From Macrostomum lignano (taxonomy: Eukaryota): a DNA stretch of 64,000 nucleotides. Shown here piece by piece: positions 1 through 33,086 of this stretch. The stretch's first letter is position 1; every line of letters starts with the position of its first letter. The position numbers and the translations under genes were made by a program. The stretch lies in the NCBI GenBank assembly GCA_002269645.1, contig NIVC01001830.1:124001-188000 (forward strand), read 5' to 3'. Under the pieces are notes generated by a model, which searched no databases, was not told where the DNA came from, and was given only the letters and a program-made list of their open reading frames with translations.

Positions 1-70
1 CAGTCTGAGGGCAGTTCAGTCTGAGGGCAGTTCAGTCTGAGGGCAGTTCAGTCTGAGGGCAGTTCAGTCT
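1..70. repeat. 16-bp tandem repeat (CAGTCTGAGGGCAGTT), truncated by window start
   Basis: About 4.4 perfect copies read directly. Confidence 0.9.
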
Positions 71-1397
71 AGTCTATAAGGTTTCACAGGATTTAGGATC
101 CTAGACATGGCAGTGTATCTGACAGTACGAGTAATTCACGGTTTCTGTTATCACTCTATTTGTAGAATTCACTGCTCACGCCCAGCAGATCTCCAGGAGA
201 CCAGTATTCTCCTCGCATACCGATGGCTGGCAGCACTGAGTCACCGCCCCCGAACTACCAGGAGGCTGAGGGAGGGGGAGCTTGGAGAACAATGGCGGCA
301 AAGACACGGCAGAATGAGCAGGCAGTAAAGGGATTATATGGGAGATACAACACTGAGAGGAGGTGGTCTGAATGCGAGATGAGCTCACCCTGCTTCTCTC
401 TTGCTTTTCTTTGCGTCGCTTTAGCCAGCCTGGGAAAATGAGGAGCAGCACCATGGAGCTGCCGCAGCTGCATCCAGCAGCAGCCCAGCCTCTCCTCTTC
501 ATCCTCCGTCTACGGGCCGAGCTTACCCAACCCCCCCCCCTAAGCGATTTCCCAGCGGGCGGTCTCTATCTTCTCCCAGTTTCCTTTCCCCTCCCCATTC
601 GCATGCACTACTCCAGGCTGTGGAAGACGGTGGATGGGAGGGGGGAGGGATAATTCTCCCCTCAACACCCAGCGCTCGCAAGCTGAGCCACTGGCCACTG
701 AACCATCTCTCTAGTTTGCCAGTAGGGACGATTCGTCTTTCGACTATTAGCAGGTCTCCTTCCCAGCAGCCGCCCCCCCCTCTTGAGTTGAAAAACACAA
801 CTTGTTGATCTTGGCGCCGCCAGAGGAAGTGTTTAAGAGCTGCAAAAGTACAAAGAATAGAAAAACAGGGTGAAAATTCGGTTGGATTGATCAAATCAAG
901 TCGTCAAGGAGTCCAGTAAAGCTTTCTCACTCTTTCCTCGCTTCCTTGGACACTCTTCTGTCTGGCTCTTTCTCAGAACGGTTCATTTAGAAGACTAGGA
1001 GACGGTTATTCTGGTTGTTAATACTTTTTTAGGCTATAAATATATGCAACTACATGTGTATATATTTAGCTAGCGTTGTCAAAGCAGTATGCTGCTGTTG
1101 CATGGAACAGCGCTAGATAGTGGACATAAGCATAGAGAAAGAAGCATATTATAAAGTCAAGACTGACAGAAACGGATTGAGATTGTAAAGTTGTCACTGC
1201 GGCGGCTCGAGAGGCATCATAATTGTCATCTTTTTGTCGAAAGCAAGATTTATTCAAGATCGTAGCGAGAGCAGACAATTGTCAAACAGGTTTTCTGCTC
1301 CGCCAGGTCGAATCGTTGGAGCGATATCGAGTTTTTGGTGCCAAGTTCCATTGAGTTCTCATTGACAACCGGCAATTTTATTGGACAGACTCTGGTC

Positions 1398-2909
1398 TCA
1401 CAGAGCAGACTGCAGCATCAAACCGCTCGGCAACAGAAGGTTGAAAGCAGCAAACAATATCGAACTGTGGAGTCTGTCACCCCTGGCCGAGGGCTTCTTG
1501 TTGAAGGACTTCGAAGACGAAGCGGTGGCGGCTAGCAGATGCCCTCGGGCATCCTGTTCGTTGTCGTGTTCATGCTCGTGACCTCCGTGACTGTCGTGTG
1601 AGTGCACCGAGGCCCGGCTCATGCTCGCGCAGCTGGACTCGAGCAGGTACTCCTGCTCGGGATCGAACCAGCGACCGCACCGGCAGCTGTATTGGGCGCC
1701 GAAGCTGCGCCAGCTCAGAGAGGCGCCATCGCTGTCGCGCCACTTCCAGCCATCGCGGCACCGGCTTAGCGCCGTCAATTCAAAGTACTTCGCCCGATGC
1801 GCGTGACCGAAGCGCCAGCCGTACAGCAGGTGCTGCTCGAAGCCCGGCGGTCCCCGGCAGATCCCGGTGATGGCCGCGCCGGTCACCTTGACTCGCGTGA
1901 AATTGTACAGCTCGCAGCCGCACTGCAGCGGATTGTCGTAGAGGTTCACGCTGCTGGAGTCCCAGCGGCAGGGGTCGGTCGACTCAATGGTTGGGTGGCT
2001 GAGAAAGCCGAGGTGCCGGATGTTGTTTTGCTGCAGCGTCAGCGTCAGTGGCAGGCGCAGGCGGGCGAACGCGAAGTCTCCAATCCTTTCGATTTTGTTG
2101 CTGTCGAAATTGAGGGTCAGCCTGCGGCGCCCGCTGAAAGGGAAGCTCAGGCCGAGGAAGCTGACGGCGTCCAGCTCCTTGAGGCTGTTCCGCGCCATGT
2201 GCAGCGCGTCGAGCGACTGCAGCGGAGCCAGGAAGTCAACCGGCAGGGCGGTCAATCCGAGTCCGTTGAGCCGCAGGGTGTGGAGGCAGCTGGCCAGCGG
2301 CCGCAGCAGGTTTGGATTTTCCCTCACGACAGCTTCCGGGTTGTCGCTTAGATCGAGCGTCTCCAGGCCGCGCGTGTCGGCAAACAGCTGGTCCGGCAGG
2401 TGGCCCAGACTGTTGAAGGTCAGGTCCAGGTGCCGCAGACTCCGCCCGGGGCCGGACAGAGCGCGCGGATCAAGGCGACTGGCGTTGACATCTTTGAGCG
2501 ACAGGGCGGCGAGACTGACGAAGCTGCTCAGGTGCGCTCGGGTGACGGTCGGCAGTCGCGACCTGGCCAGATTCAGGTCTTGAACGAACGGCAGGAAGCG
2601 GGCGAATTCCCGGTCGGCGGAGAGCGCCAGGATCTCGTTGGAGTTGAGGCCGCGGCCGCGGCCGCAGTCAAGGGTCAGGCTGAGATCGACTCGCTCGCAC
2701 AGGGCGGCGCTGGCGTTGCTGCCGCAGGCGCCGATGACGGCAACCTCGCGGCAGGTGACGGAGCAGAGGCCCGCCGAGACAGCGCCGAGCTTCCTGGAGC
2801 CGTCGCAGGAGGCGACAGTTGCGGTGGTGGCGGCCGCAGTTTCCAGGGCCAAAGCCGCCGAGGGCAGCAGGAAACGGAGGACTATTGGGAGGGTCCAACT
2901 GAGAGACAT
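1398..2909 (-). CDS. Intronless secreted/GPI-anchored leucine-rich-repeat protein, 503 aa
   Basis: Hydrophobic N-terminal signal (MSLSWTLPIVLRFLLPSAALA). Repeated LxxLxLxxN motifs (LRHLDLTFNSL, LETLDLSDNP, LHTLRLNGLGL, LDALHMARNSL, LTLQQNNI). LRRCT-type NPLQCGC...C. Polar spacer then hydrophobic C-terminus (SILFAAFNLLLPSGLMLQSAL) with no cytoplasmic tail. Confidence 0.85.
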   Translation of the reverse strand: MSLSWTLPIVLRFLLPSAALALETAAATTATVASCDGSRKLGAVSAGLCSVTCREVAVIGACGSNASAALCERVDLSLTLDCGRGRGLNSNEILALSADREFARFLPFVQDLNLARSRLPTVTRAHLSSFVSLAALSLKDVNASRLDPRALSGPGRSLRHLDLTFNSLGHLPDQLFADTRGLETLDLSDNPEAVVRENPNLLRPLASCLHTLRLNGLGLTALPVDFLAPLQSLDALHMARNSLKELDAVSFLGLSFPFSGRRRLTLNFDSNKIERIGDFAFARLRLPLTLTLQQNNIRHLGFLSHPTIESTDPCRWDSSSVNLYDNPLQCGCELYNFTRVKVTGAAITGICRGPPGFEQHLLYGWRFGHAHRAKYFELTALSRCRDGWKWRDSDGASLSWRSFGAQYSCRCGRWFDPEQEYLLESSCASMSRASVHSHDSHGGHEHEHDNEQDARGHLLAATASSSKSFNKKPSARGDRLHSSILFAAFNLLLPSGLMLQSAL

Positions 2910-3706
2910 TGTCTTCTGCAGCAGAAGGGACCCGGGGCTGTTAAGACAGAAACGAGTGGCCTGTGTCTTAAGTACTCAAGAGCTGCTCATTTGCATGGGG
3001 TGAGTCCAAGGCTATCAGCGATTGGCTGAGCAAGGACTGATTTGGACGGATGACGAAGAGAGAACGTTTGCATCAGCTGACTCCTACTAATTTTTATGCG
3101 TTTTCACTACTTGTGAGTAGCAATCGAAATGTTTTTGACTTAAATTTAGCTAACGATTCCGTTTAACCCGTCTCGGAAAAGTTCTAGACATGTGATTCCA
3201 GTACGATGCTCGAATGCATGCTCGGATGTATGAGGCTCTCATGATGCTCGCAGGCCCATGCAGTACTTGTGAAAGTTATTGAAAAACGATAAAGATTGCG
3301 CTCGTATAATGCAAGTACGGTGCCTATTGGACACCATAAATAATGAAATGGGCGTCGAGATGAAGCCCAATTTGGTTACTTTAGAATATCCATATTTACG
3401 CTCGATCGAATTACATAAAAGTAGGTATTGAGGGCGGAAATAGAATATATCTGGGATTATAAAATTAGAGAAACATATTGTAACTGAATTACATCCAGGA
3501 CAATCTTTTAAAATGTATACACGTGGACGACAACAGGAAAGCCAGCTTATGACCAATTATGACATCCAGGTCCAGCTCTACAATTAAAAATAAGCAAATA
3601 ATCGATGCTTTAATTGAATGTTTGCAGAAAAAATATCGTTGAAAAAGTTTCAAAAAGAGTTTCTACTTCAATCGATGGTGATTTGGATCTTTTTGAGCTG
3701 CCGCGG

Positions 3707-4711
3707 CTACCCGCAGAGCTGGTCCAGCTGCTGGAACTCAACCGTGCTTAGCGCAGTCTTGGCGATGGCGTAGCAGATCAGGCGGCCTTTCAGCCGAAAC
3801 CTACTGTCAGAGTGGTAGCCCAGCCTGAGACAGCCGGGTGAGCTGTACATCCCGAAGGCGTTGCTCGCCCGGACGCGCATCGAAGACCCGTTAAAGTAAA
3901 AGTTGTTCAGGGAGTTTCCGTTGAACACAACGCCAACCGAGAACTGCATCGGAGAGTCGTTGGCCAGAGGGGCTGGTTCGATGTCCGCCCGACCCCACTG
4001 CTTGAAACTGTTGGCTATAAACCGATGCCGAACCATGGGAAAACCGTTTCTTTCGCCTAGAGCTCCAGCTTCATATCCCCATTGGCAGTTATAAAAGTGA
4101 TGATAGTTTTTCCCGTAGTGACTGAACCACAGATCGGTAGCAGTCAGTCGTCTGAATACTTTTGCATAAAATGAGAAATTCGCAGGTGTCTCGAGAAAAG
4201 ACGAGATCAAGGTGCCGCCGCGGGTGTCCACCTCGATGTAATCATTCCTAGAGCCAAACAGGTGGGCCCCGTCAGCGTCGTGGACGACATCTCCGTGAGG
4301 CGTCGCGTCGAAGCTACCCGGACTGACGAGGTTGGCGAAGCCCCGCCTGAAGTCGAACAGCACGACCAGCTTGGACTTCACGTCCCGCCTCACGTGACTC
4401 ACGCATGGATCGGCGCTCTGAGCCTCGGACCGGTTGAAGAGGCCGGCCAGCTGGTTGGAGTCGCCAAGGTAGCAGACTCCGTTGGAGCGGTGCAGCACCG
4501 AGCAGCTGGCGTTGGCTGCGCAGGCCGACAAGCAGGCGCCAGCGTCTTGTGCGCCAGACAACCAGCTTAGCTGAGCGAGGCTTGCATTGCTGGGGCACAC
4601 CGTCCGCTTGTCGAAGGTGACGTTCTGCTTCACGATTCGAGTTCTGGCCTCCCCGCTGGCGGTACAAAGCCACAGCAGCAGCAGCGGCATGGGAGCGGCT
4701 CGGGCTTGCAT
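3707..4711 (-). CDS. Secreted PAN/apple-like + LamG/ConA-like protein, paralog 1 (start at 4711 or 4690)
   Basis: Signal peptide MPLLLLWLCTASGEA. C-x3-C-x5-C-x9-C cluster (CLSACAANASCSVLHRSNGVC). LVVLFDFRRG...HLFGSRNDYIEV...NFSFYAKV resembles the start of LamG_3-type domains. Aligns over its full length with three neighbours. Confidence 0.8.
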   Translation of the reverse strand: MQARAAPMPLLLLWLCTASGEARTRIVKQNVTFDKRTVCPSNASLAQLSWLSGAQDAGACLSACAANASCSVLHRSNGVCYLGDSNQLAGLFNRSEAQSADPCVSHVRRDVKSKLVVLFDFRRGFANLVSPGSFDATPHGDVVHDADGAHLFGSRNDYIEVDTRGGTLISSFLETPANFSFYAKVFRRLTATDLWFSHYGKNYHHFYNCQWGYEAGALGERNGFPMVRHRFIANSFKQWGRADIEPAPLANDSPMQFSVGVVFNGNSLNNFYFNGSSMRVRASNAFGMYSSPGCLRLGYHSDSRFRLKGRLICYAIAKTALSTVEFQQLDQLCG

Positions 4712-6136
4712 ATCGCGACTGGCTGGTTTGTTGAAAGGCGCTCGCAGAGTTGGACTTCTGTGTCCGCAGTTCCCGCGCCTCGCCAGGGCTAAATAGAATT
4801 CCAGAGGGCCTTGGGACGGACCAATCAGGAACGAGGCTGTCTTTGGCTTATCGTTCTTTGTGGCAAAGCGACTCGGTTTGTACAATCCAGCGGAGTTTTG
4901 TTGTTGTGGGCGTTTCTATAGCTACACAACTTGCTTTCTGGTTTCTGCTATCAGGCAGAGACTAGCTACTAGGAGAAGAATGTTTTAGGCCTGCTTTGTA
5001 ATGAACTATGTACCTTTTGAAATAGGGAAGCTTAAATACTATGTCTGTACAAATTCTAAGACACCAATGAGACATGCGCCTGTCAACAATTGATTCCGTT
5101 GGGAGACATTGGGACAAGCAGGTTTGACACGTCTTGTTGGTATGACTTAAAATGATTCGAAATGAATTTGAAATTATTTGAATGGCTGAAATATTCGTCT
5201 ACGAGCTACTATGAAATAGCCGTTGTTTTCGGTAGCGCTTCGAAGTGGTCCTTGGAGCATGGTGAGTAGACTGAGTAAGTTGGGCACTTCCACTCCACTT
5301 TTTTTACGAACCAAGGACACGTACATGCCTTCTTAGAGAAAAAACCGTCAAGATGTCATGCCAGGTTAACCCTCTTAACGCGCTTGCCTATTCAACCGAT
5401 TACTTCGCACTTCGCACCGAGTAGCTGAGCTTAAACAGTTTTTTTCACTTCAGCTGCACTCGACACGACTTGCCAAACTTGCTAGCATAGTAGCTTTCTC
5501 TCAACTACCATCCTGGTGCTAACAGAAGGCATTGAAGCCCCTTCCATAACCCACTGAGCCGATCTCGTAGGTAGGCGATGGCTTGACCAGAAAATCGATG
5601 AGTTTCCATAGAAACTTCTACTTAAAGACTGAGCATTGTTGCCAGGTAAGAAGCAAAGCCTGCGACTACCTCAAGACTAAGAGTAAGGGATCTGGGGCCC
5701 CGGCACCGATGGCGCCATAGGCAGGCTCAACTGACTGAGTCTACATGTAAGAACACTTTGCGTCGCTCAACAAGCTTCATTCTCAAGCTAGCAGTCGCAC
5801 CCGCCCATTGTTGAACAGCCTCACGGAATCCTTTAGAGGCTTCAAGCAACGTCAAGGTTATAAACGGAAGAGTTTATTCTACCTACATGTCGGGTAGACA
5901 CGCATCCAGAGATTCAGCCGCATTTCCGCTGCGCTACCCACCCCCTCCCTCCCTGTTCGGCTGTCCATCAGCCTCGTTAAAAGTACACGCCTATATTAGA
6001 CCCTCTAGACATTGGAGCACTGGTTGATTCATTTGAAGTTGGTGGGAGAATGGCTTGAGAACACTTTTATGAAGAGCTTTACGCAAACTCGCATCAAGTT
6101 TGCCACAGGCAAGCACTACTCAAGTAACATATATAT

Positions 6137-6935
6137 AGGACGCTACACTCGAAATCTAAGGTAAATGTTTTGAAGGCAACTTGTCGCCGAAAAATACACT
6201 ACAGAGATAGGAGGTTTTAATTTTTTCAGCACAAAAATTGTTATTGCTTTTGATAGGAGGCAGATCCAGTGTTCATCTTTTGATATGTTGTGCCTTTCTT
6301 ATTTCCCTATCGATATTCATGAAGCTTTTCGTTCAGAAATAGTTTTAAAGGCAGGTTTCACCGGAAAAATACACTACGGAGATAGGAAATTTCACGATTT
6401 TCAACACTAAAACAGTGATTGGGTCTCTTAACAGTGTAAGAGAAAGTCCTAATCACACTATTTTGTGCCTCACATGCTGCTCTAACGACGCATTAATCGA
6501 TTTTTCATGTTAAATTGGTCTGTCACTTAAAAAACGTTTAAAATAATGACAAGACCAATTTAACATGAAAAATCGATTAATGCGTCGTTAGAGCAGCATG
6601 TGAGGCACAAAATAGTGTGATTAGGACTTTCTCTTACACTGTTAAGAGACCCAATCACTGTTTTAGTGTTGAAAATCGTGAAATTTCCTATCTCCGTAGT
6701 GTATTTTTCCGGTGAAACCTGCCTTTAAACTATTTCTGAACGAAAAGCTTCATGAATATCGATAGAGCAATAAGAAAGGCACAACATATCAAAAGATGAA
6801 CACTGGATCTGCCTCCTATCAAAAGCAATAACAATTTTTGTGCGGAAAGAATTAAAACCTCCTATCTCTGTAGTGTATTTTTCGGGGACAAGTTGCCTTC
6901 AAAACATTTACCATAGATTTCGAGTGTTGCGTCCT
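6137..6935. mobile_element. ~800 bp near-perfect palindrome (foldback/MITE-like; arms ~385 bp, spacer ~30 bp)
   Basis: 6137-6520 is the reverse complement of 6553-6935. The inner ~170 bp of each arm look perfect; about 9 differences lie in the outer part. No clear TSD. Confidence 0.8.
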
Positions 6936-7662
6936 TCTACTAAGTTGTCCTTGGCCACAGGCCGAATAGGCCCTATAATGAAAGTAGCGCATCGGTGAAG
7001 GATCAGCTACTATGAGTAGAAATATAAGATCGTAGGAATTTTAACATAAAATTATCCAACGTGGGTTAAAAAATTCGATACAAGTGCAGGAGCCAAAAGG
7101 TGATCATAATTTTGAACTTAGTTGACAACAAGAGGGAGTGGAAATTCTGCCAAGCCAAGAACTTTTTGAGAGGAAACGCAGGAGCTTCCTTCGTCTTCTT
7201 TTTCGATATTTTACAAGCTTTGATTTAATAACAAGTTCAATAATTTTCTCAAAAAACCATGTAATACTTCCTGTAGCACTCGACATTGGTGTCGGTAGGG
7301 GCAAGAAACAAATCCAAGTCCATGTCATGTTTGATATTTACTTTTAAAATAGATGGTGAAATCTGTTGTTAAACTTTAAACTATTTATTTTCATGATTTT
7401 CAAGTCTAAAATTACTGATCTGTTCATAAATTCGAATTATTTAGCTTAGTTGCAAGTAGTGGTGAAAGAGTTTTACGTTCATTTTTAGTCGTAAATATTG
7501 TTTAGAAAAATATGCCTCTTTTTGCTCTGCCTCGTGTCTGAAAGTCTAACTTTAGAATAACTGACCTTGGTACATCTGTTCAGGTACATGTAATAATGTT
7601 TTATTCTTGGAGTCTGAACTATTTATCAACCGAGGACGTCACAGTCTGCTGCCAGCAGCTCT

Positions 7663-8646
7663 CTACCACGGGCACAGCTGCTCAAGCTGGAGGAACTCAG
7701 CGGTGCTCAGAGCGGCCTTGGCGATCACATAGCAGATCATGCGACCTTTCAAAGTGCGAGCAGAATTCAGATTATAGCCCAGACGGAGAAGCCGAGGCTC
7801 GGTGTACGATCCCCAGCCGAGATCCGACTCGGTTGCCAGCTCAGAGCCGTTGAAGTAGAAATTGTTCAGCGTCTTGCCGTGGAACACGGCTCCGAGCGAG
7901 ATGGCCTGAGTCAAACCGATTGTCGCAATCTGGGCAGACTGGCGGGTCTCAGCACTCTCAAGGTGGGACGAGCCGCTCAGAGACAGGAACTTGTGCTGCA
8001 CCCAAGCACGTCGGTCGCGATCTCCGAAGTACAGCAGCTTTACTGAACCATCCAACACGGAGTTATGGAAACAGTGGTAGCTGGTCTCGTACTGGTCCTG
8101 ACGAACGACCTTGGCGAAGAATGAAAAGTTGCTCGGATGGTCCAGGTAAGTAGAGATCAAGGACCCGCTCATGGTGTCCACCTCAATGTAGTCAGCGACA
8201 GCGCCCGGAAAGTGAGCTCCCTGAGCGTCCCTGGTCACCGCTCCGCGAGGCGTGGCATCGAAGGTTCCCGGGCTGGCGAGATTGCTGAAGCCCTGCCGGA
8301 AGTCGAAGGCCAGTACAATCTTCGACATGAGGCTGCCGACCTTCTCGAAGCTCACGCACGGATCGGCACTCGGCGGCGATGTCAGAGTAAAGAGGCTGGT
8401 CCGCTGCTCGCTGGTGCCGAAGTAGCAGGTGCCGCCTGTGCGGTGCAGTACAGAGCAGTTGGGGCTGGTGGCGCACTGCACCTGGCAGGTCCTCGGATCC
8501 TGAGCGCCCTCCAGCTTGTCGAGCTGAGGCAGGCTGGCAGTGCCGGGACACACGGCCAGCTGCCTGAACGAGACTCGCTGGTTGAATCCGGTGGCCACCG
8601 CTGCGCAGAGGCAGAGGAGAGCCAGAATGCTTGAGCAGAGCTGCAT
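7663..8646 (-). CDS. Secreted PAN/apple-like + LamG/ConA-like protein, paralog 2, 327 aa
   Basis: Signal peptide MQLCSSILALLCLCAAVATG; same Cys pattern and domain motifs as paralog 1; intact intronless ORF; AATAAA on the minus strand at 7600-7605. Confidence 0.85.
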   Translation of the reverse strand: MQLCSSILALLCLCAAVATGFNQRVSFRQLAVCPGTASLPQLDKLEGAQDPRTCQVQCATSPNCSVLHRTGGTCYFGTSEQRTSLFTLTSPPSADPCVSFEKVGSLMSKIVLAFDFRQGFSNLASPGTFDATPRGAVTRDAQGAHFPGAVADYIEVDTMSGSLISTYLDHPSNFSFFAKVVRQDQYETSYHCFHNSVLDGSVKLLYFGDRDRRAWVQHKFLSLSGSSHLESAETRQSAQIATIGLTQAISLGAVFHGKTLNNFYFNGSELATESDLGWGSYTEPRLLRLGYNLNSARTLKGRMICYVIAKAALSTAEFLQLEQLCPW

Positions 8647-9660
8647 GGCTTGCAGAAGTTAGGCAGGTGAGGAAACTGCGGAGGAGTTGCACTAAATACT
8701 AAGCAGTTTCAAGCGCATTTACAAGTTTGCCAACAAATTTTCTCCCTTTCGCTTTTCCGCATCTTCAAGCGGAACTGGCTAGGCAGGCATTGTCTATTGT
8801 CCCAGCGGGGTCCCATGCAGACTGGGGAGGGCATTGTTCGCTTCTGCAGTGGTGCTGCATTGGCTTTGAGCATGACTTCATAAATTATTCATGTCCTTCT
8901 TTCTACAAAGAACTCTCCAGCACCACCTTGTTGAAGAGGCCACTTTGAAGATAGTAAAAGATTCTATAGACAGAGGAGGTTCTCCAGCATTGTCAAAGTA
9001 TCGCGGAGTGAAGTGAGGAGAAACTCAACAATGAGGACCAGGGAGTCCTAGGGAGAAAATCTGAAGCAGGCAGGCCCGCTTGTTTTCAAGGACTACTAGA
9101 CTTGCTTTTTTAATTTTGTTTCAACTCTTTGCCGTGAAAATTTGCATATTCGCAAATAAGCAACCATTTCAGAAGTGTGCCACAGTGTTGCAAAAACATA
9201 TTTCGTAACTATTAGAAGTTTATAAAAATAAATCCGGAAATTTTAACGATGAGAAATTTCAAATTCTGAATTTTTCTAAGAAAATAATAGTTGCTGGAAG
9301 CATGTACCGTTTTAATTAGCTGAGGTGAGCCCGTCAATATGTCTATCGTGAGGCATTGCTATTATATAAAAGTTAAAAAAATTTGAGTTTGAATGAGCTG
9401 TAAACAGGAAAATTACTGCTTTCAGCCTGGTTATTGTTTTGACCTTACCGGCAATTCTCTATAATTAGGTAGGGTGCTTCTAGGTTGCTGGCAATGGAAT
9501 TATTCATTAATGTGCTTGCGTGCAGAAAAATCTCTTTGGAATTTTGGCAACGAAATACGTTACTTCAAGTAGCCTTTGATGTTCTGACTACGTTTATTGT
9601 AAAGTTTACTTCTCTCGTACTCAAAGACAGACAGAAAGCAAGAAAATTTAAAGCATGAAA

Positions 9661-11045
9661 ATACATCAGAGGCGATTCCGTCCATCTCACACCAGAGGCG
9701 ATTCCATCCATCTGACATCAGAGAGGCGATTCCGTCCATCTGACATCAGAGAGGCGATTCCGTCCATCTGACATCAGAGAGGCGATTCCATCCATCTGAC
9801 ATCAGAGGCGATTCCATCCATCTTACATCAGAGGCGATTCCGTCCATCTGACATCAGAGAGGCGATTCCGTCCATCTGACATCAGAGAGGCGATTCCGTC
9901 CATCTGACATCAGAGAGGCGATTCCATCCATCTGACATCAGAGGCGATTCCATCCATCTTACATCAGAGGCGATTCCGTCCATCTGACATCAGAGAGGCG
10001 ATTCCGTCCATCTGACATCAGAGAGGCGATTCCGTCCATCTGACATCAGAGAGCGATTCCATCCATCTGACATCAGAGAGGCGATTCCATCCATCTGACA
10101 TCAGAGGCGATTCCGTCCATCTGACATCAGAGGCGATTCCATCCATCTCACATCAGAGGCGATTCCGTCCATCTGACATCAGAGGCGATTCCATCCATCT
10201 GACATCAGAGGCGATTCCATCCATCTGACATCAGAGGCGATTCCATCCATCTGACATCAGAGGCGATTCCGTCCATCTGACATCAGAGGCGATTCCGTCC
10301 ATCTGACATCAGAGGCGATTCCATCCATCTCACACCAGAGGCGATTCCATCCATCTCACATCAGAGGCGATTCCATCCATCTCACACCAGAGGCGATTCC
10401 ATCCATCTGACATCAGAGAGGCGATTCCATCCATCTGACATCAGAGGCGATTCCGTCCATCTGACATCAGAGAGGCGATTCCATCCATCTGACATCAGAG
10501 GCGATTCCGTCCATCTGACATCAGAGGCGATTCCATCCATCTCACATCAGAGGCGATTCCGTCCATCTGACATCAGAGGCGATTCCATCCATCTGACATC
10601 AGAGGCGATTCCATCCATCTGACATCAGAGGCGATTCCGTCCATCTGACATCAGAGGCGATTCCATCCATCTGACATCAGAGGCGATTCCGTCCATCTGA
10701 CATCAGAGGCGATTCCATCCATCTCACATCAGAGGCGATTCCGTCCATCTGACATCAGAGGCGATTCCATCCATCTGACATCAGAGGCGATTCCATCCAT
10801 CTGACATCAGAGGCGATTCCATCCATCTGACATCAGAGGCGATTCCGTCCATCTGACATCAGAGAGGCGATTCCGTCCATCTGACATCAGAGGCGATTCC
10901 GTCCATCTGACATCAGAGGCGATTCCGTCCATCTGACATCAGAGGCGATTCCGTCCATCTGACATCAGAGGCGATTCCGTCCATCTGACATCAGAGGCGA
11001 TTCCGTCCATCTGACATCAGAGGCGATTCCGTCCATCTGACATCC
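9661..11045. repeat. 26/28-bp minisatellite (GAGGCGATTCCRTCCATCTGACATCA +/- GA)
   Basis: About 50 head-to-tail copies without unique spacers. Confidence 0.95.
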
Positions 11046-11330
11046 GAGGACGAGGCGCAGTCGGTCCAGCACGTGGGACTTCTCTGTTAAATTCAAGTTG
11101 CAGGCACCGAAGAACCGGGTTCAGGCCCCAGATGATGTCCGCCTATATGGATGACTTACTGCCATTCAGAGGGACATTAGCCATAGAATCTTATCGTGGA
11201 ATGGGGCAACCAGCCAGATTTGGCAGCTCAATTGAAATTGAAATTGAAGGAATGAAAACTGGAAGGCAGAAGCACACGGTGAATCTTTGCGTAATGAATT
11301 CTACACTCGCAGTATTGTGTCTGGTTTTTA

Positions 11331-11640
11331 TAATAATAAGTAATAATAATTGACTACCACCTGCACCAATGGGCAGATGTGCAACCGACAGCCCAGCCGC
11401 AGCCATTGCGCTGCGCATCTGAGGCTGCGTACGGCTGTACAGTCCAAGGACTGGGGGGGTCGCCAAACACATTCAATTACCCCAGCTAATGCTGACACCC
11501 ATTTCACAGCTGGGTGAACTGAAGCAATGCAGAGTTAAGTGTCTTGCTCAAGGACGAAAACTGTTCCAGTGGATTAAGAATCGAACCTCCGACCTCTCAG
11601 TCGTGAGTCTCACACTCTGAGCACTAGGCTACAACCATCC
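11331..11640 (-). mobile_element. tRNA-derived SINE with CORE-like central domain and (ATT)n tail
   Basis: Minus strand reads an A-box-like TAGCCTAGTG, then B box GGTTCGATTC, then CCTTGAGCAAGACACTTAACTC...CAGCTGTGAAATGGG (resembles the CORE/MIR domain). A second copy lies at 41485-41695. Confidence 0.7.
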
Positions 11641-11976
11641 TTTCTTCTAGAATAATGGGCTCAGTTTTGCTCCAGCAGACTTTTGTCTGATCGCTTCCGT
11701 TTGCTACCGTTTTGCTGACAATGCCTATTGTTGTATTGCACAGACAATGAGCCGTTTCGCTAATGGATCGGAAAAAAACTTTTCCGCCATTTTCCAGCAT
11801 TGTCTCCAAACATGTGGTTATATAGCGCTTCTATTTTAGAAGAAATCCAGCATGTAGTCTAACTCGTAAAAAGGCAAATTTGATTGACATCACGCCAAAG
11901 TATGAGAGTAGCTCGGTACTCTACCGGCGGTGACATTGCTTATCCCGATACCCATGTCAATGTTACCTCGTTTATC

Positions 11977-12342
11977 GGGGGGCCGTAGCCCAGCGGTAGC
12001 GCAGCTGCTCTGGTGTGCCAGCGACCCAGGCTCGATTCCAAGTGCAGCCACATTAATTTGGGGCTGAATTGTAATCTCGGCTTGGCTCTGCTCGTGCAAT
12101 TAACGGCCTTGAGAGCCAACCCCCCAAGGCGCAGTGAAGTGTACATGCCTAACGATAATATAAAGTTAGGGCCGCTGTACACTCCTGTGTGAGTGTGTGC
12201 CTGCGTACGTATCCGCGCGCTTGTATGCCTGCTCAGGGGAGTCGGCGGAATGGGCAGTAATGCCTCTCGCCGGTTGTGTGCCTATGTCGCTTAAAGTGCG
12301 CCAGGGTGCACACAACCCCCCTGCCTCTAATAAAAATAAAAT
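11977..12342 (+). mobile_element. Second tRNA-derived SINE-like element with A-rich tail
   Basis: GGGGGCCGTAGCCCAGCGGTAG (A box)...GGCTCGATTCC (B-box-like); cloverleaf degraded; ends AATAAAAATAAAATA. Confidence 0.6.
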
Positions 12343-12753
12343 ACCTCGTTTATCTCATCATCAAAAAATTTTGAAATTACTTTCGGCCTTGAGTTATTTC
12401 TTGGACCCTGCATCAAGAAACCAAGTCAAATACACATTCTAACTGTTTTTTTACCTTCAAAAAGATGACAACTTTGTCTTTATATTGCTTTGTTATAATG
12501 CATGATAGCTTACTTTTTTAAACATTGAAGTGACGCCAACAGAACTGTTCTTGTTTTAATCTTTGCTTAACAACAGGCAAAAAGAGGTTCTAAGGGATGC
12601 GCTAGCACAAAAACAAATAAACAAAGTCCTACACTGCAGATCGTTTGTCCTATCTAATCTAGTTATTTTTCTGGATGTAGCTCCGTAGTTCAAAGTAAAA
12701 GTTTTTAAACCTCTTGTCAACCGAGGACGTCACAGTCTGCTGCCAGCAGCTCT

Positions 12754-13743
12754 TTACCACGGGCACAGCTGCTCAAGCTGGAGGAACTCAGCGGTGCTCA
12801 GAGCGGTCTTGGCGATCATGTAGCAGATCATGCGACCTTTCAAGGTGTGACTTGGATTCGAATGATAGCCCAGACGGAGAAGCCGAGGCTCGGTGTACGA
12901 TCCCCAGCCGAGATCTGACTGGGTTGCCAAGTCAGAGCCGTTGAAGTAGAAATTGTTCAGCGTCTTGCCGTGGAACACGGCTCCGAGCGAGATGGCCTGG
13001 GTCGAACCGACTGGCACAATCTGGGCAGACTGGCGGTTCTCAGCACTCTCAAAGTGGGATGAGCCGCTCAGAGACAGGAACTTGTGCTGCACCCAAGCAC
13101 GCCAGTCGCGGTCTCCAAAGTACAGCAGTTGTTCCGAATTATCCAACACGGAGTTATGGAAACAGTGGTAGCTGGTCTCGTACTGGTCCTGACGAACCAC
13201 CTTGGCGAAGAATGAAAAGTTGCTGGGATGGTCCAGGTAAGTGGAGATCAAGGACCCGCTCATTGTGTCCACCTCGATGTAATCGGCGACAGCGCCCGGA
13301 AAGTGAGCTCCCTGAGCGTCCCTGGTCACCGCTCCGCGAGGCGTGGCATCGAAGGTTCCGGGGCTGGCGAGATTGCTGAAGCCCTGCCGGAAGTCGAAGG
13401 CCAGTACAATCTTCGACATGATGCTGTCGACCTTCTCGAAGCTCACGCACGGATCGGCGCCCGGCGGTGATGTCAGAGTAAAGAGGCTGGTCCGCTGCTC
13501 GCTGGTGCCGAAGTAGCAGGTGCCGCCTGTGCGGTGCAGCACAGAGCAGTTGGGGCTGGTGGCGCACTGCACCTGGCAGGTCCTCGGATCCTGAGCGCCC
13601 TCCAGCTTGTCGAGCTGAGGCAGGCTGGCGGTGCTGGGACACACGGCCAGCTGCCTGAACGAGACTCGCTGGTTGAAGCCGGTGGCCACCGCTGCGCAGA
13701 GGCAGAGGAGAGCCAGAATGCTTGAGGAGAGCTGGTGCTGCAT
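12754..13743 (-). CDS. Secreted PAN/apple-like + LamG/ConA-like protein, paralog 3, 329 aa
   Basis: 24 substitutions plus a 2-aa indel versus paralog 2; intact ORF with signal peptide. Confidence 0.85.
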   Translation of the reverse strand: MQHQLSSSILALLCLCAAVATGFNQRVSFRQLAVCPSTASLPQLDKLEGAQDPRTCQVQCATSPNCSVLHRTGGTCYFGTSEQRTSLFTLTSPPGADPCVSFEKVDSIMSKIVLAFDFRQGFSNLASPGTFDATPRGAVTRDAQGAHFPGAVADYIEVDTMSGSLISTYLDHPSNFSFFAKVVRQDQYETSYHCFHNSVLDNSEQLLYFGDRDWRAWVQHKFLSLSGSSHFESAENRQSAQIVPVGSTQAISLGAVFHGKTLNNFYFNGSDLATQSDLGWGSYTEPRLLRLGYHSNPSHTLKGRMICYMIAKTALSTAEFLQLEQLCPW

Positions 13744-13788
13744 GGCTTGCAGAAGTTAGGCAGGTGGGGAAGCTGTTGCTGAGTCCCC

Positions 13789-13796
13789 TTTTTATA
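13789..13796 (-). promoter_or_regulatory. Candidate TATA box (TATAAAAA) of paralog 3
   Basis: 46-53 nt upstream of the ATG. Paralog 2 has TATTTAG at the equivalent spacing (8692-8698). Confidence 0.5.
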
Positions 13797-14422
13797 TTAA
13801 AAAACTCAACTCAACCACCCCATCCTACTTGTCTATCTTTGGCTCTTAAGGCATGAAAAATGCCAAACTGATGCTGTCTTTTAGGCTGAACTTTTCCTTA
13901 ATTCCCGAAGAGTAAAGATAAGGTTGAAAGATAAAATTTCGCAGAAGGCTCACGTGCTGTTTCAGCATCTGATCTAGCAGTGCTGAGAGGGAATCTGATC
14001 TAGCAGTGCTGAGTGGGAATCTGATCTATCGTTGCCGATATGGAATCTGATTTAACAGTGCAGAGATTCCACTGACTGAAGAAGCTGAGCAGAAGTAAAA
14101 TCAGTCAAGACTCAGAAAATCCACAGCCAGTTCAGCGCCTAAGCTTGTGTCAATTCATCCCCAATACTCCCGTTTTAGCTAGCTGGATGTATTCACAAGC
14201 AGCTGCAGCTGCAGCCTGTGTTCTCTTTGGATACCTTTGCTGCTGCTGAGAATGCAGTCATACCAAAACTTTTCAAGGCAAACGCTGGCGTTTTAAAGTG
14301 AGCAGTGTTTTTAAGTTTTTAAAGCTCTGTAACTTTTCTTAAAACTCTACCGGAAGCTTTGTAAGCAAACTTTCTGCAATCAGAATTCGTAGACCCAACT
14401 CTAGCTTGGCATCTAATCAGCC

Positions 14423-19197
<4,775 letters not shown>

Positions 19198-19671
19198 TAA
19201 GTTAAATCCACATAAATTAAAAAGGCAATTCGGAAGACAGTTGATAAACATTGTTCCAACAAGAACCAGTGCTTATTGCACATAAGTACGAGTCGTACAT
19301 TGCAATTGTTGGTACGAAGTACCAGTATATTGTTTTTCAGGAGCGATAAAAAAGTACACAATATAGTTTTAGTCAAAAAGGCGAAAAATAAAAATACGCT
19401 CGTAGTTACGAGCTAGTTTCAGATTTTTTATCACAGATTAACTCAAGTTTTAAAAAATTGTTTCAATCAACTTCATTCTTTCTGGATCCGAAAAAATCGC
19501 ATCATACTACTCAAAAAGTAGCTTTAAAAGAAAAATTTTGTTTGCTGCAAAAGTGACGCTATTGCGGTGTTTTACTCGTATATTTTTTAAATAAAAGTTC
19601 TTCGATAGCTGCAAAATGAATTAAGTTTCAATTTTCTTTCTGGCTTTTCTTAGACATTTAAAAACCACCTT

Positions 19672-20628
19672 CTAGGAGCAGATCTGCTCCAGCTGCTTCA
19701 ACTCAGCGGTGCTCAGGGCAGCCTTGGCGATGGCGTAGCAGATGATGCGGCCCTTGAGGCCGGCGCTCGCATCCTTGTTGAAGCCGAGTCGCAGGCACTT
19801 AGGCGTATCGTAGGTTCCCCAATTCATGGCATCTTTAGTCGCCAGGTACGTGCCGTTGAAATGGAAATTGCTCAGAGTCTTGCCGTTGAAAACAGCTCCG
19901 AGAGAGATGGCCAGAGGCGCGCTGCCTGTGGCAATTTTGGCCGACTGTCGAGTCTCGGCGGTGCCCGCGCTCAGGAACTGGTGCTGAACCCAGGCCTTCT
20001 CCCCGCGATCGCCGAAGTACGCCATTTTCGATGAAGCTGCGTTCACGCAATCGTAGAAGCAGTGGTAAGAGGCTTGGTAGTATGTCTCTCTGACTACCAT
20101 GGCGTAGAAGGTAAAGTTGTTGGGATGGTCCAGGTAGTCAGCAGCCAGGGATCCGCTGCGCGTGTCCACTTCGATGTAGTCGGCAGCCGTTCCGGCAAAG
20201 TGGGCGCCCAGGCTGTCCCTGGTGACGCCTCCGTGGGGTGCGGCATCGAAGGTGCCCGGACTGACCAGGTTGGTGTAGCCCTGCCGGAAGTCGAACAACA
20301 CCACCAGCTTGGACCGGGCGCTCTTAGCGAAGCTCTCGCATGGATCGGAGTTCGGCGACACGGTCAGGGTGAAGAGGCTGCCCCGCTGCTCAGCGGTGCC
20401 GAAGTAGCAGGTGCCGCCAGAGCGGTACAGCACGAAGCAGGTGGGTTCGATGGCGCACTCAACGAAGCAGGTCCTCGGATCCTGAGCGCCCTGCAGCTTG
20501 GCGAGTTCCGCCAGTTTGTCAGTCGCCGGACAGATGTCCAGCTTGGAGAAAGAACTTTTGCTCGACATGGAGGCGGTCGCGACTGTTGAGCAGCAGACGC
20601 CGAGAGACAGCAACAGAAAGAGCCACAT
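19672..20628 (-). CDS. Secreted PAN/apple-like + LamG/ConA-like protein, paralog 4, 318 aa
   Basis: Start placed at MWLFLLLSLGVCC (signal peptide); aligns over its full length with paralogs 1-3. Confidence 0.85.
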   Translation of the reverse strand: MWLFLLLSLGVCCSTVATASMSSKSSFSKLDICPATDKLAELAKLQGAQDPRTCFVECAIEPTCFVLYRSGGTCYFGTAEQRGSLFTLTVSPNSDPCESFAKSARSKLVVLFDFRQGYTNLVSPGTFDAAPHGGVTRDSLGAHFAGTAADYIEVDTRSGSLAADYLDHPNNFTFYAMVVRETYYQASYHCFYDCVNAASSKMAYFGDRGEKAWVQHQFLSAGTAETRQSAKIATGSAPLAISLGAVFNGKTLSNFHFNGTYLATKDAMNWGTYDTPKCLRLGFNKDASAGLKGRIICYAIAKAALSTAELKQLEQICS

Positions 20629-21075
20629 TTCAGAGCGCCGACTTTGGGCCAAGCAGCGTGTGTGTTGGGAAAAATTAAATTGGAAAAAAAACTTGGAATT
20701 CATAAAACATCCGAAGATAAATGCTTCTCGGGGCGCCACTGTGGCGGCTTTTTTTAATGATTGGAAATTTCTGTCCGTTGAACTTTTTTAACAGCCTCTA
20801 TAAGCCCCCTGTGACGCACCAGACCAGCAACCCCAGCTGACAGAATGGCAGAATGCCTCTTCAATCATTTAGTAGCCCCAGCCATGATGCAGCGGAATGG
20901 TGATGCTGCAAAGAATTTATCCCATTCTATTAGGAATTTAATTGAGTGGAATTTTCCAGAGTAGCAGGCGAAGCGGATTGAGGCCATTGATAAGAATGAG
21001 GATGAGCAAAATGGTGGGAAATTCCATCAACGTTTGAATGTTTATTTCTGATAGTTGATCACCATCTAATATGGT

Positions 21076-21972
21076 CTGGGATCTGGGATCTGGGATCGGG
21101 ATCTGGGATCGGGATCTGGGATCGGGATCTGGGATCGGGATCTGGGATCGGGATCTGGGATCGGGATCTGGGATCGGGATCTGGGATCGGGATCTGGGAT
21201 CGGGATCTGGGATCGGGATTTGGGATCGGGATCTGGGATCGGGATCTGGGATCGGGATCTGGGATCGGGATCTGGGATCGGGATCTGGGATCGGGATCTG
21301 GGATCGGGATCTGGGATCGGGATCTGGGATCGGGATCTGGGATCGGGATCTGGGATCGGGATCTGGGATCGGGATCTGGGATCGGGATCTGGGATCGGGA
21401 TCTGGGATCGGGATCTGGGATCGGGATCTGGGATCGGGATCTGGGATCGGGATCTGGGATCGGGATCTGGGATCGGGATCTGGGATCGGGATCTGGGATC
21501 GGGATCTGGGATCGGGATCTGGGATCGGGATCTGGGATCGGGATCTGGGATCGGGATCTGGGATCGGGATCTGGGATCGGGATCTGGGATCGGGATCTGG
21601 GATCGGGATCTGGGATCGGGATCTGGGATCGGGATCTGGGATCGGGATCTGGGATCGGGATCTGGGATCGGGATCTGGGATCGGGATCTGGGATCGGGAT
21701 CTGGGATCGGGATCTGGGATCGGGATCTGGGATCGGGATCTGGGATCGGGATCTGGGATCGGGATCTGGGATCGGGATCTGGGATCGGGATCTGGGATCG
21801 GGATCTGGGATCGGGATCTGGGATCGGGATCTGGGATCGGGATCTGGGATCGGGATCTGGGATCGGGATCTGGGATCGGGATCTGGGATCGGGATCTGGG
21901 ATCGGGATCTGGGATCGGGATCTGGGATCGGGATCTGGGATCGGGATCTGGGATCGGGATCTGGGATCGGGA
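21076..21972. repeat. 13-bp tandem repeat GGGATCTGGGATC (6+7 subunits), ~69 copies
   Basis: Read directly; explains the repetitive ORFs on both strands. Confidence 0.97.
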
Positions 21973-22816: not shown

Positions 22817-22895
22817 ATGTTTGTCAAAGCACTTCTGATTGCGACATGCTTTTCAGCTTTGATTTTAACTGGAGAGTCTTCTGCGAGCTTGATGG
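22817..22895 (+). CDS. Three-Ig-domain protein, exon 1 (signal peptide MFVKALLIATCFSALILTGESSASLM)
   Basis: ATG at 22817; donor G|GTGAGA, phase 1, matches the next exon. Confidence 0.75.
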
Positions 22896-23769
22896 GTGAG
22901 ACAGACACACAGGTGATTGCACTGTGGTGACTGAGATGACTTGATGGGTGAGACAGACACACAGGTGATTGCACTGTGGTGACTGAGATGACTTGATGGG
23001 TGAGACAGACACACAGGTGATTGCACTGTGGTGACTGAGATGACTTGATGGGTGAGACAGACACACAGGTGATTGCACTGTGGTGACTGAGATGACTTGA
23101 TGGGTGAGACAGACACACAGGTGATTGCACTGTGGTGACTGAGATGACTTGATGGGTGAGACAGACACACAGGTGATTGCACTGTGGTGACTGAGATGAC
23201 TTGATGGGTGAGACAGACACACAGGTGATTGCACTGTGGTGACTGAGATGACTTGATGGGTGAGACAGACACACAAGTGATTGCACTGTGGTGACTGAGA
23301 TGACTTGATGGGTGAGACAGACACACAAGTGATTGCACTGTGGTGACTGAGATGACTTGATGGGTGAGACAGACACACAGGTGATTGCACTGTGGTGACT
23401 GAGATGACTTGATGGGTGAGACAGACACACAGGTGATTGCACTGTGGTGACTGAGATGACTTGATGGGTGAGACAGACACACAGGTGATTGCACTGTGGT
23501 GACTGAGATGACTTGATGGGTGAGACAGACACACAGGTGATTGCATTGTGGTGACTGAGATGACTTGATGGGTGAGACAGACACACAGGTGATTGCACTG
23601 TGGTGACTGAGATGACTTGATGGGTGAGACAGACACACAGGTGATTGCACTGTGGTGACTGAGATGACTTGATGGGTGAGACAGACACACAAGTGATTGC
23701 ATTGTGGTGACTGAGATGACTTGATGGGTGAGACAGACACACAGGTGATTGCACTGTGGTGACTGAGAC
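22888..23769. repeat. 52-bp minisatellite, ~17 copies, intron 1 of the Ig gene
   Basis: Period 52 (22891 to 22943); each unit contains the exon 1 donor junction. Confidence 0.95.
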
Positions 23770-23956: not shown

Positions 23957-23995
23957 GTGAGTTACTCTATCTGCTTTAGCACCTAGCTAATTGAG

Positions 23996-25287
23996 TATAG
24001 ATGTCTCAGTATCCTAGCTCACTGCTGAGAATAGATGTCTCAGTAACCTAGCTAATTTCTGAGAATAGATGTCTCAGTATCCTAGCTAATTTCTGAGAAT
24101 AGATGTCTCAGTATCCTAGCTAATTTCTGAGAATAGATGTCTCAGTATCCTAGCTAATTTCTGAGAATAGATGTCTCAGTATCCTACCTCATTGCTGAGA
24201 ATAGATGTCTCAGTATCCTAGCTAATTTCTGAGAATAGATGTCTCAGTATCCTAGCTCACTGATGAGAATAGATGTCTCAGTTTCCTAGCTCACTGCTGA
24301 GAATAGATGTCTCAGTATCCTACCTCATTGCTGAGAATAGATGTCTCAGTATCCTACCTCATTGCTGAGAATAGATGTCTCAGTATCCTACCTCACTGCT
24401 AAGAATGGATGTCTCAGTATCCTACCTCATTGCTGAGAATAGATGTCTCAGTATCCTAGCTAATTTCTGAGAATAGATGTCTCAGTATCCTAGCTAATTT
24501 CTGAGAATAGATGTCTCAGTATCCTAGCTAATTTCTGAGAATAGATGTCTCAGTATCCTACCTCATTGCTGAGAATAGATGTCTCAGTATCCTAGCTAAT
24601 TTCTGAGAATAGATGTCTCAGTATCCTAGCTCACTGATGAGAATAGATGTCTCAGTATCCTGGCTCACTGCTGAGAATAGATGTCTCAGTATCCTAGCTC
24701 ACTGATGAGAATAGATGTCTCAGTATCCTGGCTCACTGATGAGAATAGATGTCTCAGTATCCTGGCTCACTGATGAGAATAGATGTCTCAGTATCCTAGC
24801 TCACTGATGAGAATAGATGTCTCAGTATCCTGGCTCACTGATGAGAATAGACGTCTCAGTATCCTGGCTCACTGATGAGAATAGATGTCTCAGTATCCTG
24901 GCTCACTGATGAGAATAGATGTCTCAGTATCCTAGCTCACTGATGAGAATAGATGTCTCAGTATCCTAGCTCACTGATGAGAATAGATGTCTCAGTATCC
25001 TGGCTCACTGATGAGAATAGATGTCTCAGTATCCTAGCTCACTGATGAGAATAGATGTCTCAGTATCCTAGCTCACTGATGAGAATAGATGTCTCAGTAT
25101 CCTAGCTCACTGATGAGAATAGATGTCTCAGTATCCTGGCTCACTGATGAGAATAGATGTCTCAGTATCCTAGCTCACTGATGAGAATAGATGTCTCAGT
25201 ATCCTAGCTCACTGATGAGAATAGATGTCTCAGTATCCTAGCTCACTGATGAGAATAGATGTCTCAGTATCCTAGCTCACTGCTGAG
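23996..25287. repeat. 34-bp minisatellite (GAGAATAGATGTCTCAGTATCCTAGCTCACTGAT and variants), ~38 copies, intron 2
   Basis: Read directly; some units hold a CTGAGA/TCTCAG inverted pair. Confidence 0.95.
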
Positions 25288-31099: not shown

Positions 31100-31310
31100 T
31101 TGCGCAGGATCGTTTCAGTCTCGTCGCCACTGTGAAAACTCCACTTCGGGGGTAAGACCCCCCCAAGGCAGAGAGCTTGTATTTAATATAGCTGGCCAAC
31201 AATAAAGGTTGTCTGACAAAGCGTCAGCCAATCACACGCGCGCGTGCAGGTGTACACCTGCACTGTACATTACACTAAGCGGAGCAACTGAGCAGACCCA
31301 CGCTACCACA

Positions 31311-31970
31311 GGAGGGAAGACTGTGGAGGGAAGGCAGGGGAGGGAAGGCAGGGGAGGGAAGGCAGGGGAGGGAAGACTGGGGAGGGAAGGCAGGGGAGGG
31401 AAGGCAGGGGAGGGAAGGCAGGGGAGGGAAGGCAGGGGAGGGAAGGCAGGGGAGGGAAGGCAGGGGAGGGAAGGCAGGGGAGGGAAGACTGGGGAGGGAA
31501 GGAAAGAGGGAAGACAGGGGAGGGAAGGCAGGGGAGGAAAGACAGGGGAGGGAAGACTGGGGAGGGAAGGCAAGGGAGGGAAGACTGGGGAGGGAAGACT
31601 GGGGAGGGAAGACTGGGGAGGGAAGGCAGGGGAGGGAAGGTAGGGGAGGGAAGGTAGGGGAGGGAAGGCAGCTTGTCGCAGGGGAGGGAAGGCAGGGGAG
31701 GGAAGGCAGGGGAGGGAAGGCAGGGGAGGGAAGACTGGGGAGGGAAGACTGGGGAGGGAAGGCAGGGGAGGGAAGGCAGGGGAGGGAAGGTAGGGGAGGG
31801 AAGGTAGGGGAGGGAAGGCAGCTTGTCGCAGGGGAGGGAAGGCAGGGGAGGGAAGGCAGGGGAGGGAAGGCAGGGGAGGGAAGACTGGGGAGGGAAGACT
31901 GGGGAGGGAAGGCAGGGGAGGGAAGGCAGGGGAGGGAAGGCAGGGGAGGGAAGGCAGGGGAGGGAAGACA
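31311..31970. repeat. 14-bp purine-rich satellite, right part
   Basis: Same unit as 25656-26790. Confidence 0.95.
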
Positions 31971-32037
31971 GGAGTCTCAAATCTAGATAAAAGCAGGTTC
32001 TTCTCAATCTAAATGGATACCTCGTTCTCCCCCGCAG

Positions 32038-33056: not shown

Positions 33057-33086
33057 CAATCGAAATTTTGTCCCAATCACCCGCAG

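Follow-up and report, generated by a model that had tools for sequence, protein, structure and literature searches.

Four apparently unannotated tandem genes for predicted secreted apple/jelly-roll proteins in the flatworm Macrostomum lignano

We analyzed a 64,000-nucleotide stretch of the Macrostomum lignano genome (assembly GCA_002269645.1, contig NIVC01001830.1, positions 124,001 to 188,000 of the forward strand), hereafter called the window, which carries four related single-exon genes (g1 to g4) on its minus strand (Table 1). An original prediction, made by a model from the letters of the window, had described four same-strand, intronless genes of 318 to 334 amino acids (aa) between positions 3707 and 20628; these coordinates and lengths match both the open reading frame (ORF) listing and tblastn searches with each product. 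By the same two means, exactly four homologous and intact minus-strand ORFs were found in the window, and tblastn retrieved no fifth copy or fragment of g1 to g4 from it. The start codon chosen was in each case the first ATG giving a hydrophobic N terminus.

The four proteins are colinear end to end, each encoded by one uninterrupted ORF with no frame breaks, and their pairwise identities range from 43 to 93%. The closest pair is g2 and g3 (93%; synonymous divergence, dS, 0.118). The g4 protein is about 59 to 62% identical to these two (62% to g2), and g1 is the most divergent paralog (about 43 to 48% to the others; 48% to g2). The alignment contains 121 invariant columns. Among them are six Cys residues in the N-terminal module (C33, C54, C58, C64, C74, and C97 in g2 numbering), C305 and C325 in the C-terminal domain, and motifs that include FDFRxG, DYIEVDT, NFxFxA, FxFNG, LRLG, and LKGRxICY. 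The identical architecture and conserved Cys originally claimed are therefore present in all four proteins.

Table 1. Features of the four-gene array, with positions in the window
Feature	Positions	Strand	Description
g1, single-exon coding sequence	3707-4711	-	334 aa from first ATG, MQARAAPMPLLLL...QLCG and stop; ORF open to 4885
g2, single-exon coding sequence	7663-8646	-	327 aa
g3, single-exon coding sequence	12754-13743	-	329 aa
g4, single-exon coding sequence	19672-20628	-	318 aa, counted from the ATG yielding a signal peptide; ORF open to 20739
g2, signal-peptide-like N terminus	8587-8646	-	aa 1-20, MQLCSSILALLCLCAAVATG/FNQ; hydropathy and sequence
g2, PAN/apple module	8338-8571	-	aa 26-103; six-Cys spacing, profile matches, model
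g2, modeled concanavalin A-like (Laminin_G_3-type) jelly roll	7666-8325	-	aa 108-327; C-terminal helix, C305/C325
g2/g3 homology tract	7623-8678 vs 12714-13775	-	94.2% over 1062 bp; DNA self-comparison

Each protein is predicted to consist of a cleavable signal peptide, a disulfide-knotted PAN/apple module of ~78 aa, and a jelly roll of ~220 aa. At the N terminus, the maximum Kyte-Doolittle value over a 19-residue window is 1.9 to 2.2 in g2 to g4, and the h-region of g1 is shorter than in these three. The hydrophobic stretch is followed by small residues at -3/-1 in an n-h-c layout (e.g., ...AAVATG/FNQ, with the slash marking the predicted cleavage site). Hydropathy analysis found no further hydrophobic segment in any of the four proteins, the Cys residues are even in number, and N-x-S/T sequons are present; both of the latter features are conserved across g1 to g4. 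In the AlphaFold model of g2 described below, the signal region has a predicted local distance difference test (pLDDT) score of <50. The signal peptides that had been called for all four genes are thus visible as hydrophobic N termini with small -3/-1 residues, as a prediction from sequence alone.

The spacing C-x20-C-x3-C-x5-C-x9-C-x22-C occurs in 4/4 proteins. Its inner C-x3-C...C...C portion is the PAN core of plasminogen and HGF N domains, with the plasminogen disulfide pattern serving for the comparison, and the outer pair is what apple domains add to that core. A family profile made from an 18-sequence alignment was searched against all PDB sequences at E <= 10. All of its matches (9/9) were PAN/apple modules, with E values of 2.6e-4 to 0.25 and within profile positions 24 to 98. 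The best match was to the two PAN_1 domains of a Colletotrichum copper-radical oxidase (E = 2.6e-4), and the others included Toxoplasma MIC4 apple domains, factor XI apple 4, the HGF N domain, and Sarcocystis SML-2. By comparison, a phmmer search of the PDB with g2 alone gave a chance match only, and an NCBIfam scan gave nothing meaningful.

In the g2 model, a helix at residues 51 to 60 (C54 and C58) packs on a hairpin at 66 to 77 (C64 and C74) with pLDDT values of 81 to 89, and further strands are modeled at 26 to 34, 43 to 46, and 98 to 103; in the Foldseek ranking of the whole chain, where the larger domain prevails, this module gave no match of its own. The PAN/apple call of the original prediction accordingly agrees with the Cys spacing, with PDB matches that are all PAN/apple, and with UniProt, where relatives of the family are mostly auto-named "Apple domain-containing protein." With known PAN/apple modules (plasminogen/HGF N domain, factor XI, prekallikrein, MIC4, SML-2, and nematode PAN), the window proteins have in common the Cys spacing, a predicted C-x3-C helix with hairpin, an outer pair linking the first Cys to the last, profile-level similarity, and, by analogy, an extracellular binding role. 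They differ from these proteins in that one module is fused to a jelly roll, not to kringles, proteases, or apple repeats.

For the C-terminal domain, AlphaFold gave a mean pLDDT of 36.8 with the four paralogs only and 80.6 after 14 M. lignano relatives were added (18 sequences). The resulting g2 model (predicted template modeling score, 0.71) places about 14 strands in aa 110 to 309, followed by a helix at 315 to 324 that is probably pinned by a C305-C325 disulfide. A Foldseek comparison against the PDB returned 183 matches at E <= 1e-3, and the top ones (E ~1e-6, probability 1.00) all involve concanavalin A (ConA)-like jelly rolls. These comprise the lectin-like C-terminal domain of trypanosomal sialidases/trans-sialidases, the jelly-roll half of clostridial neurotoxin receptor-binding fragments, and the sialic-acid-binding CBM40 of NanJ (template modeling [TM] score, 0.65 normalized on the 183-aa target). 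Normalized on the 327-aa query, TM scores are ~0.45, which arithmetically corresponds to ~0.65 to 0.7 for a 220-aa domain. Because the matched chains are 9 to 16% identical, the similarity is at the level of the fold and has no bearing on toxicity.

At the sequence level, one M. lignano paralog (P0005) carries a weak precomputed Pfam match to PF13385 (Laminin_G_3), while most paralogs are without a Pfam match; another (P0003) is auto-named "Lectin_legB domain-containing protein" in UniProt. An hhalign comparison aligned the family with the C-terminal repeat of a hemichordate (Ptychodera flava) protein over 196 columns (91.8% probability, E = 7.5e-7). The 18-sequence profile matched no solved ConA-like chain in the PDB and, even at E <= 10, no LamG chain of the laminin, neurexin, agrin, or SHBG type. 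The pentraxin signature H-x-C-x-[ST]-W-x-[ST] was found by regular expression in 0/4 proteins, and the PDB profile matches included no pentraxin structure.

On the modeled fold, the correct label appears to be a ConA-like jelly roll of Laminin_G_3 type, not a pentraxin or a classical laminin/neurexin LamG domain. The LamG-like half of the original call is thus upheld by the model and its Foldseek matches, by the weak PF13385 match in a paralog, and by the hhalign result; the modeled fold is LamG-like, and the pentraxin-like alternative offered alongside is dropped for want of its signature in g1 to g4. With Laminin_G_3/ConA-like lectin domains (the trypanosomal sialidase lectin-like domain, CBM40, and LamG-type domains), the window family has in common a beta-sandwich of ~200 aa and the motif order F-D-F...G-x-x-F-x-G...Y-I-E-V...F-S-F-x-A-x-V...F-Y-F-N-G...L-R-L-G...L-K-G-R-x-x-x-Y. 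It differs in adding the C-terminal helix and the conserved Cys pair.

The same matches bear on whether the C-terminal domain could have a catalytic role, as a glycoside hydrolase of the ConA fold, or could be a receptor-binding or pore-forming module like those of toxins. The ConA-like superfamily includes glycosidases, and sialidase chains and neurotoxin receptor-binding fragments are among the top Foldseek matches. The parts matched, however, are non-catalytic lectin-like jelly rolls, and 9 to 16% identity amounts to generic fold similarity. The GH16-type ExDxxE motif is absent from g1 to g4, no enzyme or toxin was matched by sequence (PDB profile and NCBIfam), and the proteins contain no extra domain able to carry such an activity. 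We therefore regard an enzyme or toxin-like module as highly improbable. A non-enzymatic protein is preferred because the structures matched best are binding domains without catalytic function and the ExDxxE motif is missing.

When 1.84 billion representative proteins were searched exhaustively by HMMER with a four-paralog profile (E <= 1e-3), only 18 relatives were retrieved, 8 of them at E <= 1e-10. All named relatives are from M. lignano except the one from P. flava, and a few are gene-model fusions or bear odd auto-names. The family is thus small and almost entirely from Macrostomum, in line with the suggestion that it is lineage specific, expanded, and outside any named family; one-to-one orthology to a known conserved protein was not found in this search. 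The closest relative, UniParc UPI0007A151EB, is 37 to 42% identical to g1 to g4, and the next ones are 23 to 31% identical. A word-index protein search retrieved nothing with g2 and one paralog only with the 18-sequence alignment. A scan of JGI metagenome contigs for close relatives returned none, by a method for which the 18-sequence alignment is too divergent. We found no described family of compact secreted proteins with one apple module and one Laminin_G_3-type jelly roll.

The most similar proteins are the M. lignano "Apple domain-containing proteins" (A0A267E973/PAA58135.1, A0A267DNP4/PAA50913.1, and UPI0007A151EB). They have the same two domains in ~290 to 380 aa, the same Cys pattern, mostly a single exon, and the common ending "...LxGxxxCYxxxxxxLxxxEFxxLxxLC." They differ in being 23 to 42% identical to the window proteins and, for the members examined, solitary rather than arrayed; all are uncharacterized. 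P0005 (two copies) and P0002 (one copy) are single-exon genes, so the lack of introns is a family trait. Both also stand alone within +/-10 kb at their loci, and the four-gene array is therefore special to the g1-to-g4 subfamily.

Outside named species, two short environmental contigs, L005 (JGI 3300040801, 126-1307) and L006 (ENA ERZ23496033, 165-545), encode family members in uninterrupted ORFs; in one of them, the jelly roll is preceded by two apple modules. Environmental eukaryotes thus carry relatives that lie beyond the M. lignano reference. One further match not assigned to M. lignano is a JGI fragment with PAN repeats only. The P. flava protein (XP_070535747.1, uncharacterized) is the sole named match from outside Macrostomum, and its C-terminal repeat resembles the jelly roll of the window family. 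It differs in length (581 aa) and in having an EGF module and two jelly rolls; its N-terminal region is, as we read the sequence by eye, presumably apple-like. Since the similarity is only 19% identity, it reflects common domain types, not orthology.

The ratio of nonsynonymous to synonymous divergence (dN/dS; pairwise Nei-Gojobori) is 0.31 to 0.38 for every pair among g1 to g4, with bootstrap 95% intervals spanning 0.18 to 0.53. Synonymous divergence is 0.12 for g2-g3, about 0.8 for pairs involving g4, and 1.3 to 1.4 for those involving g1. Because the frames are open despite dS values of up to 1.3 to 1.4 and dN/dS is well below 1, selection acts on the protein; g1 to g4 are under purifying selection. 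The GC content at third codon positions (GC3) of the four genes is 0.73 to 0.78, compared with a GC content of 0.31 to 0.46 in flanking and intergenic DNA and a GC3 of 0.85 to 0.87 in exons of neighboring host genes. As GC3 is near host-exon values, the codon signature is native. Horizontal transfer was considered and rejected, given the host-like GC3 and a family that is old and dispersed in the same genome. Downstream of the stop codon, AATAAA or ATTAAA occurs at +93 in g1, +58 in g2 (AATAAA at 7600-7605), and +194 in g3. A search of the window with a spliced-leader-like query found no match.

These values also weigh on the idea that g1 to g4 are silent or dying copies (unexpressed duplicates or retrocopies) whose frames are open only through youth. 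Three features favor this idea: the genes are intronless, they have no matching product in public protein sets, and the homology of g2 and g3 covers the exon +/- 40 nucleotides (nt), superficially like an RNA-mediated copy. Yet the g1 and g4 lineages are old (dS, 0.8 to 1.4), and 4/4 frames are intact with dN/dS at ~0.35. Moreover, members at unlinked loci are likewise single-exon and are annotated genes, and no remnant of a poly(A) tail is present where the g2/g3 tract ends. Silent copies are accordingly an improbable account, and we continue to treat g1 to g4 as functional genes.

The g2/g3 tract comprises the coding sequence with a 5' extension of ~32 nt and a 3' extension of ~40 nt, and the flanks beyond it are without detectable similarity. 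A dS of 0.12 predicts ~88% identity in neutral flanks; since none is seen, the copied or homogenized unit is the exon alone. In both copies, the upstream end of the tract is pyrimidine rich with an acceptor-like CAG ~30 nt 5' of the ATG, and the downstream end precedes the poly(A) signal and shows no A-tail. Gene conversion or a small DNA duplication is favored over retroposition because of this acceptor-like CAG, the missing A-tail, and the end before the poly(A) signal. Retroposition was judged unlikely for g2/g3 on the last two of these grounds. The array would have grown by local duplication, with g2 and g3 later homogenized or re-duplicated over the exon only.

Divergence is uneven along the proteins. 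In the PAN-coding third, dS is 2 to 3 times lower than in the jelly roll (0.39 vs 1.10 for g2-g4; 0.76 vs 1.56 for g2-g1), which may reflect partial gene conversion or compositional constraint, and the dN/dS of the PAN module is higher, at 0.54 to 0.75 in older pairs. The core strands at aa 108 to 182 are most conserved (dN/dS, 0.16 to 0.23 in older pairs). The protein sequences differ most in the signal peptide and at aa 183 to 245, a loop-rich, indel-prone segment with the lowest pLDDT of the jelly-roll domain. The g1 gene lies 3.7 kb from the left edge of the window (1-3706). Because it is this near the edge and UPI0007A151EB is about as distant from g2 to g4 as g1 is, the array could continue beyond the window on that side.

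Taken together, these results favor four functional paralogous genes in a tandem array that encode a secreted, extracellular two-module binder of lectin or adhesion type, a reading to which we assign a probability of roughly 60%. In the fold classes of both domains, the known members serve as binding modules outside the cell. The protein would be released from the cell and act as a non-enzymatic binder with two sites, the apple module and the jelly-roll rim loops, each of which would engage a glycan or protein ligand. It may recognize, cross-link, or anchor extracellular material; candidate settings are mucus or matrix, the surfaces of gametes or partners, and microbes. As most divergence among the paralogs lies in the signal peptide and at aa 183 to 245, the array probably supplies variants of differing specificity. 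A lectin or pattern-recognition function, as the original prediction had it, is our inference by analogy with these fold classes.

Several observations weigh against this reading. At the sequence level, the individual PAN matches are marginal (E values of 2.6e-4 to 0.25), and Laminin_G_3 is called from a weak match in a paralog only 23 to 26% identical to the window proteins. The term "lectin" is not established, as proteins are ligands of PAN and ConA-like modules as frequently as glycans. For g4, no canonical poly(A) signal occurs in the 300 nt that follow its stop codon. Literature searches combining Macrostomum with the family, its locus tags, and its domain terms gave nothing relevant on ligand, tissue, or phenotype. 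Exact look-ups of all four products found no record in public protein sets, and annotations of M. lignano are based on transcript evidence. No protein at least 50% identical to g1 to g4 was found in a collection of 15 billion proteins; the library is clustered at 50% identity, so the lack of a match at that level means that it holds no counterpart of the four. On these grounds, g1 to g4 appear to be unannotated in public M. lignano protein sets. The look-ups are uninformative on expression, however, as no family member carries a Logan (read-assembly) source, from which it follows that M. lignano RNA-seq is apparently unrepresented in the collection.

More specific roles can be proposed for the same proteins. 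In one, they would act in reproduction as seminal-fluid, female-tract, or egg-coat components shaped by sexual selection, which would explain the restriction to the genus, the tandem duplication, and the fairly fast evolution. The proteins are predicted to be secreted, lineage restricted, and locally duplicated, with dN/dS of 0.3 to 0.4 overall and of 0.54 to 0.75 for the PAN module in older pairs. Three reports describe reproduction-related genes of Macrostomum as fast evolving with turnover (PMC7336406, PMC8662610, PMC10092323). Many prostate-limited transcripts encode secreted proteins (PMC5977470), and we assume that a large share of these lack homologs. Nothing ties g1 to g4 to any organ, though, and the prostate (seminal-fluid) screen with its Blast2GO table (PMC5977470) has no apple, PAN, lectin, or laminin annotation. 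Nor does any paralog pair reach a dN/dS of >1 over a whole domain. We consider a reproductive role unlikely as a specific assignment.

Another proposal concerns innate immunity, in which the proteins would be humoral pattern-recognition or agglutinating lectins or microbe-facing components of mucus, and the array a set of diversified specificities. A secreted two-module binder whose variability is focused at aa 183 to 245 fits this design. Sialic-acid-binding modules are among the closest fold matches, and the profile matches include micronemal apple domains of apicomplexans, which bind galactose. Set against this, four copies here and about a dozen divergent lineages genome-wide make a modest immune repertoire, and the crude pairwise method gave no positive selection. 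An immune role, too, is unlikely when stated this narrowly. A bolder version of the preferred two-module binder can be put forward only tentatively. Under it, Macrostomum-restricted binders may have diversified for fast-evolving recognition, either in partner or gamete manipulation during hermaphrodite sexual conflict or as a flatworm-specific repertoire of humoral immune lectins, with ligand specificity differing through the aa 183-to-245 loops and the apple module.

The array lies in repeat-rich DNA. Its spacers are filled with satellite sequence, including an array of 26-bp units at 9663-11049. Most of the g3-g4 spacer is an (AGTT)n microsatellite (14423-19204; 4.8 kb, ~1195 copies, 93% matches), which yields a GC skew of up to +0.93. 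Between g1 and g2 lies an 802-bp palindrome or foldback (6137-6935) that is 96.5% identical to its own reverse complement and has internal 85-bp sub-repeats. Elsewhere in the window, minisatellites with 13- to 52-bp units are very dense (e.g., 21075-21972, 22888-23768, 23992-25287, 32511-34066, 36205-37237, 45182-45903, 47430-48256, 54283-57128, and 61855-62536) and give many long spurious repeat ORFs on both strands.

From position 22255 onward, another contig of the same assembly, NIVC01001482.1, aligns to the window at 94 to 98.5% identity. The tandem-repeat copy numbers differ, and copy number in the minisatellites is the main difference between the two sequences. The window may thus represent a second haplotype or a duplicated subgenome. 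Two adjacent called genes in NIVC01001482.1 encode 727 aa over 7.0 kb and 485 aa over 7.8 kb, in agreement with the original statement that neighboring genes have long introns. An exon at 42300-43631 (443 aa) is 100% identical to M. lignano BOX15_Mlig020687g1. Ty3/gypsy-type gag-pol ORFs at 27493-31099 on the minus strand (one of 957 aa, overlapped by an integrase ORF of 311 aa) lie within a 14-bp AGGGGAGGGAAGGC minisatellite with arrays at 25661-26790 and about 31209-32007. The segment 24743-31559 (6.8 kb) corresponds to only about 0.4 kb in NIVC01001482.1, which therefore lacks this insertion and array expansion. A single tRNA-Cys(GCA) gene lies at 53834-53906 on the plus strand (Rfam, 71.3 bits; ARAGORN).

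In summary, we rate g1 to g4 as new, apparently unannotated members of a tandem family of secreted, lectin-like modular proteins that is specific to this lineage and is otherwise present in databases only as uncharacterized M. lignano entries. No general concept is changed by this finding, since the two folds are familiar ones and invertebrate genomes often contain lineage-specific tandem families of secreted proteins. A four-gene array that is apparently missing from public annotation is nonetheless a useful annotation correction. M. lignano is a tractable flatworm model, with RNA interference and transgenesis, for regeneration, bioadhesion, and sexual conflict, and the array provides a candidate set for lineage-specific recognition molecules that may act in reproduction, immunity, mucus, or adhesion.

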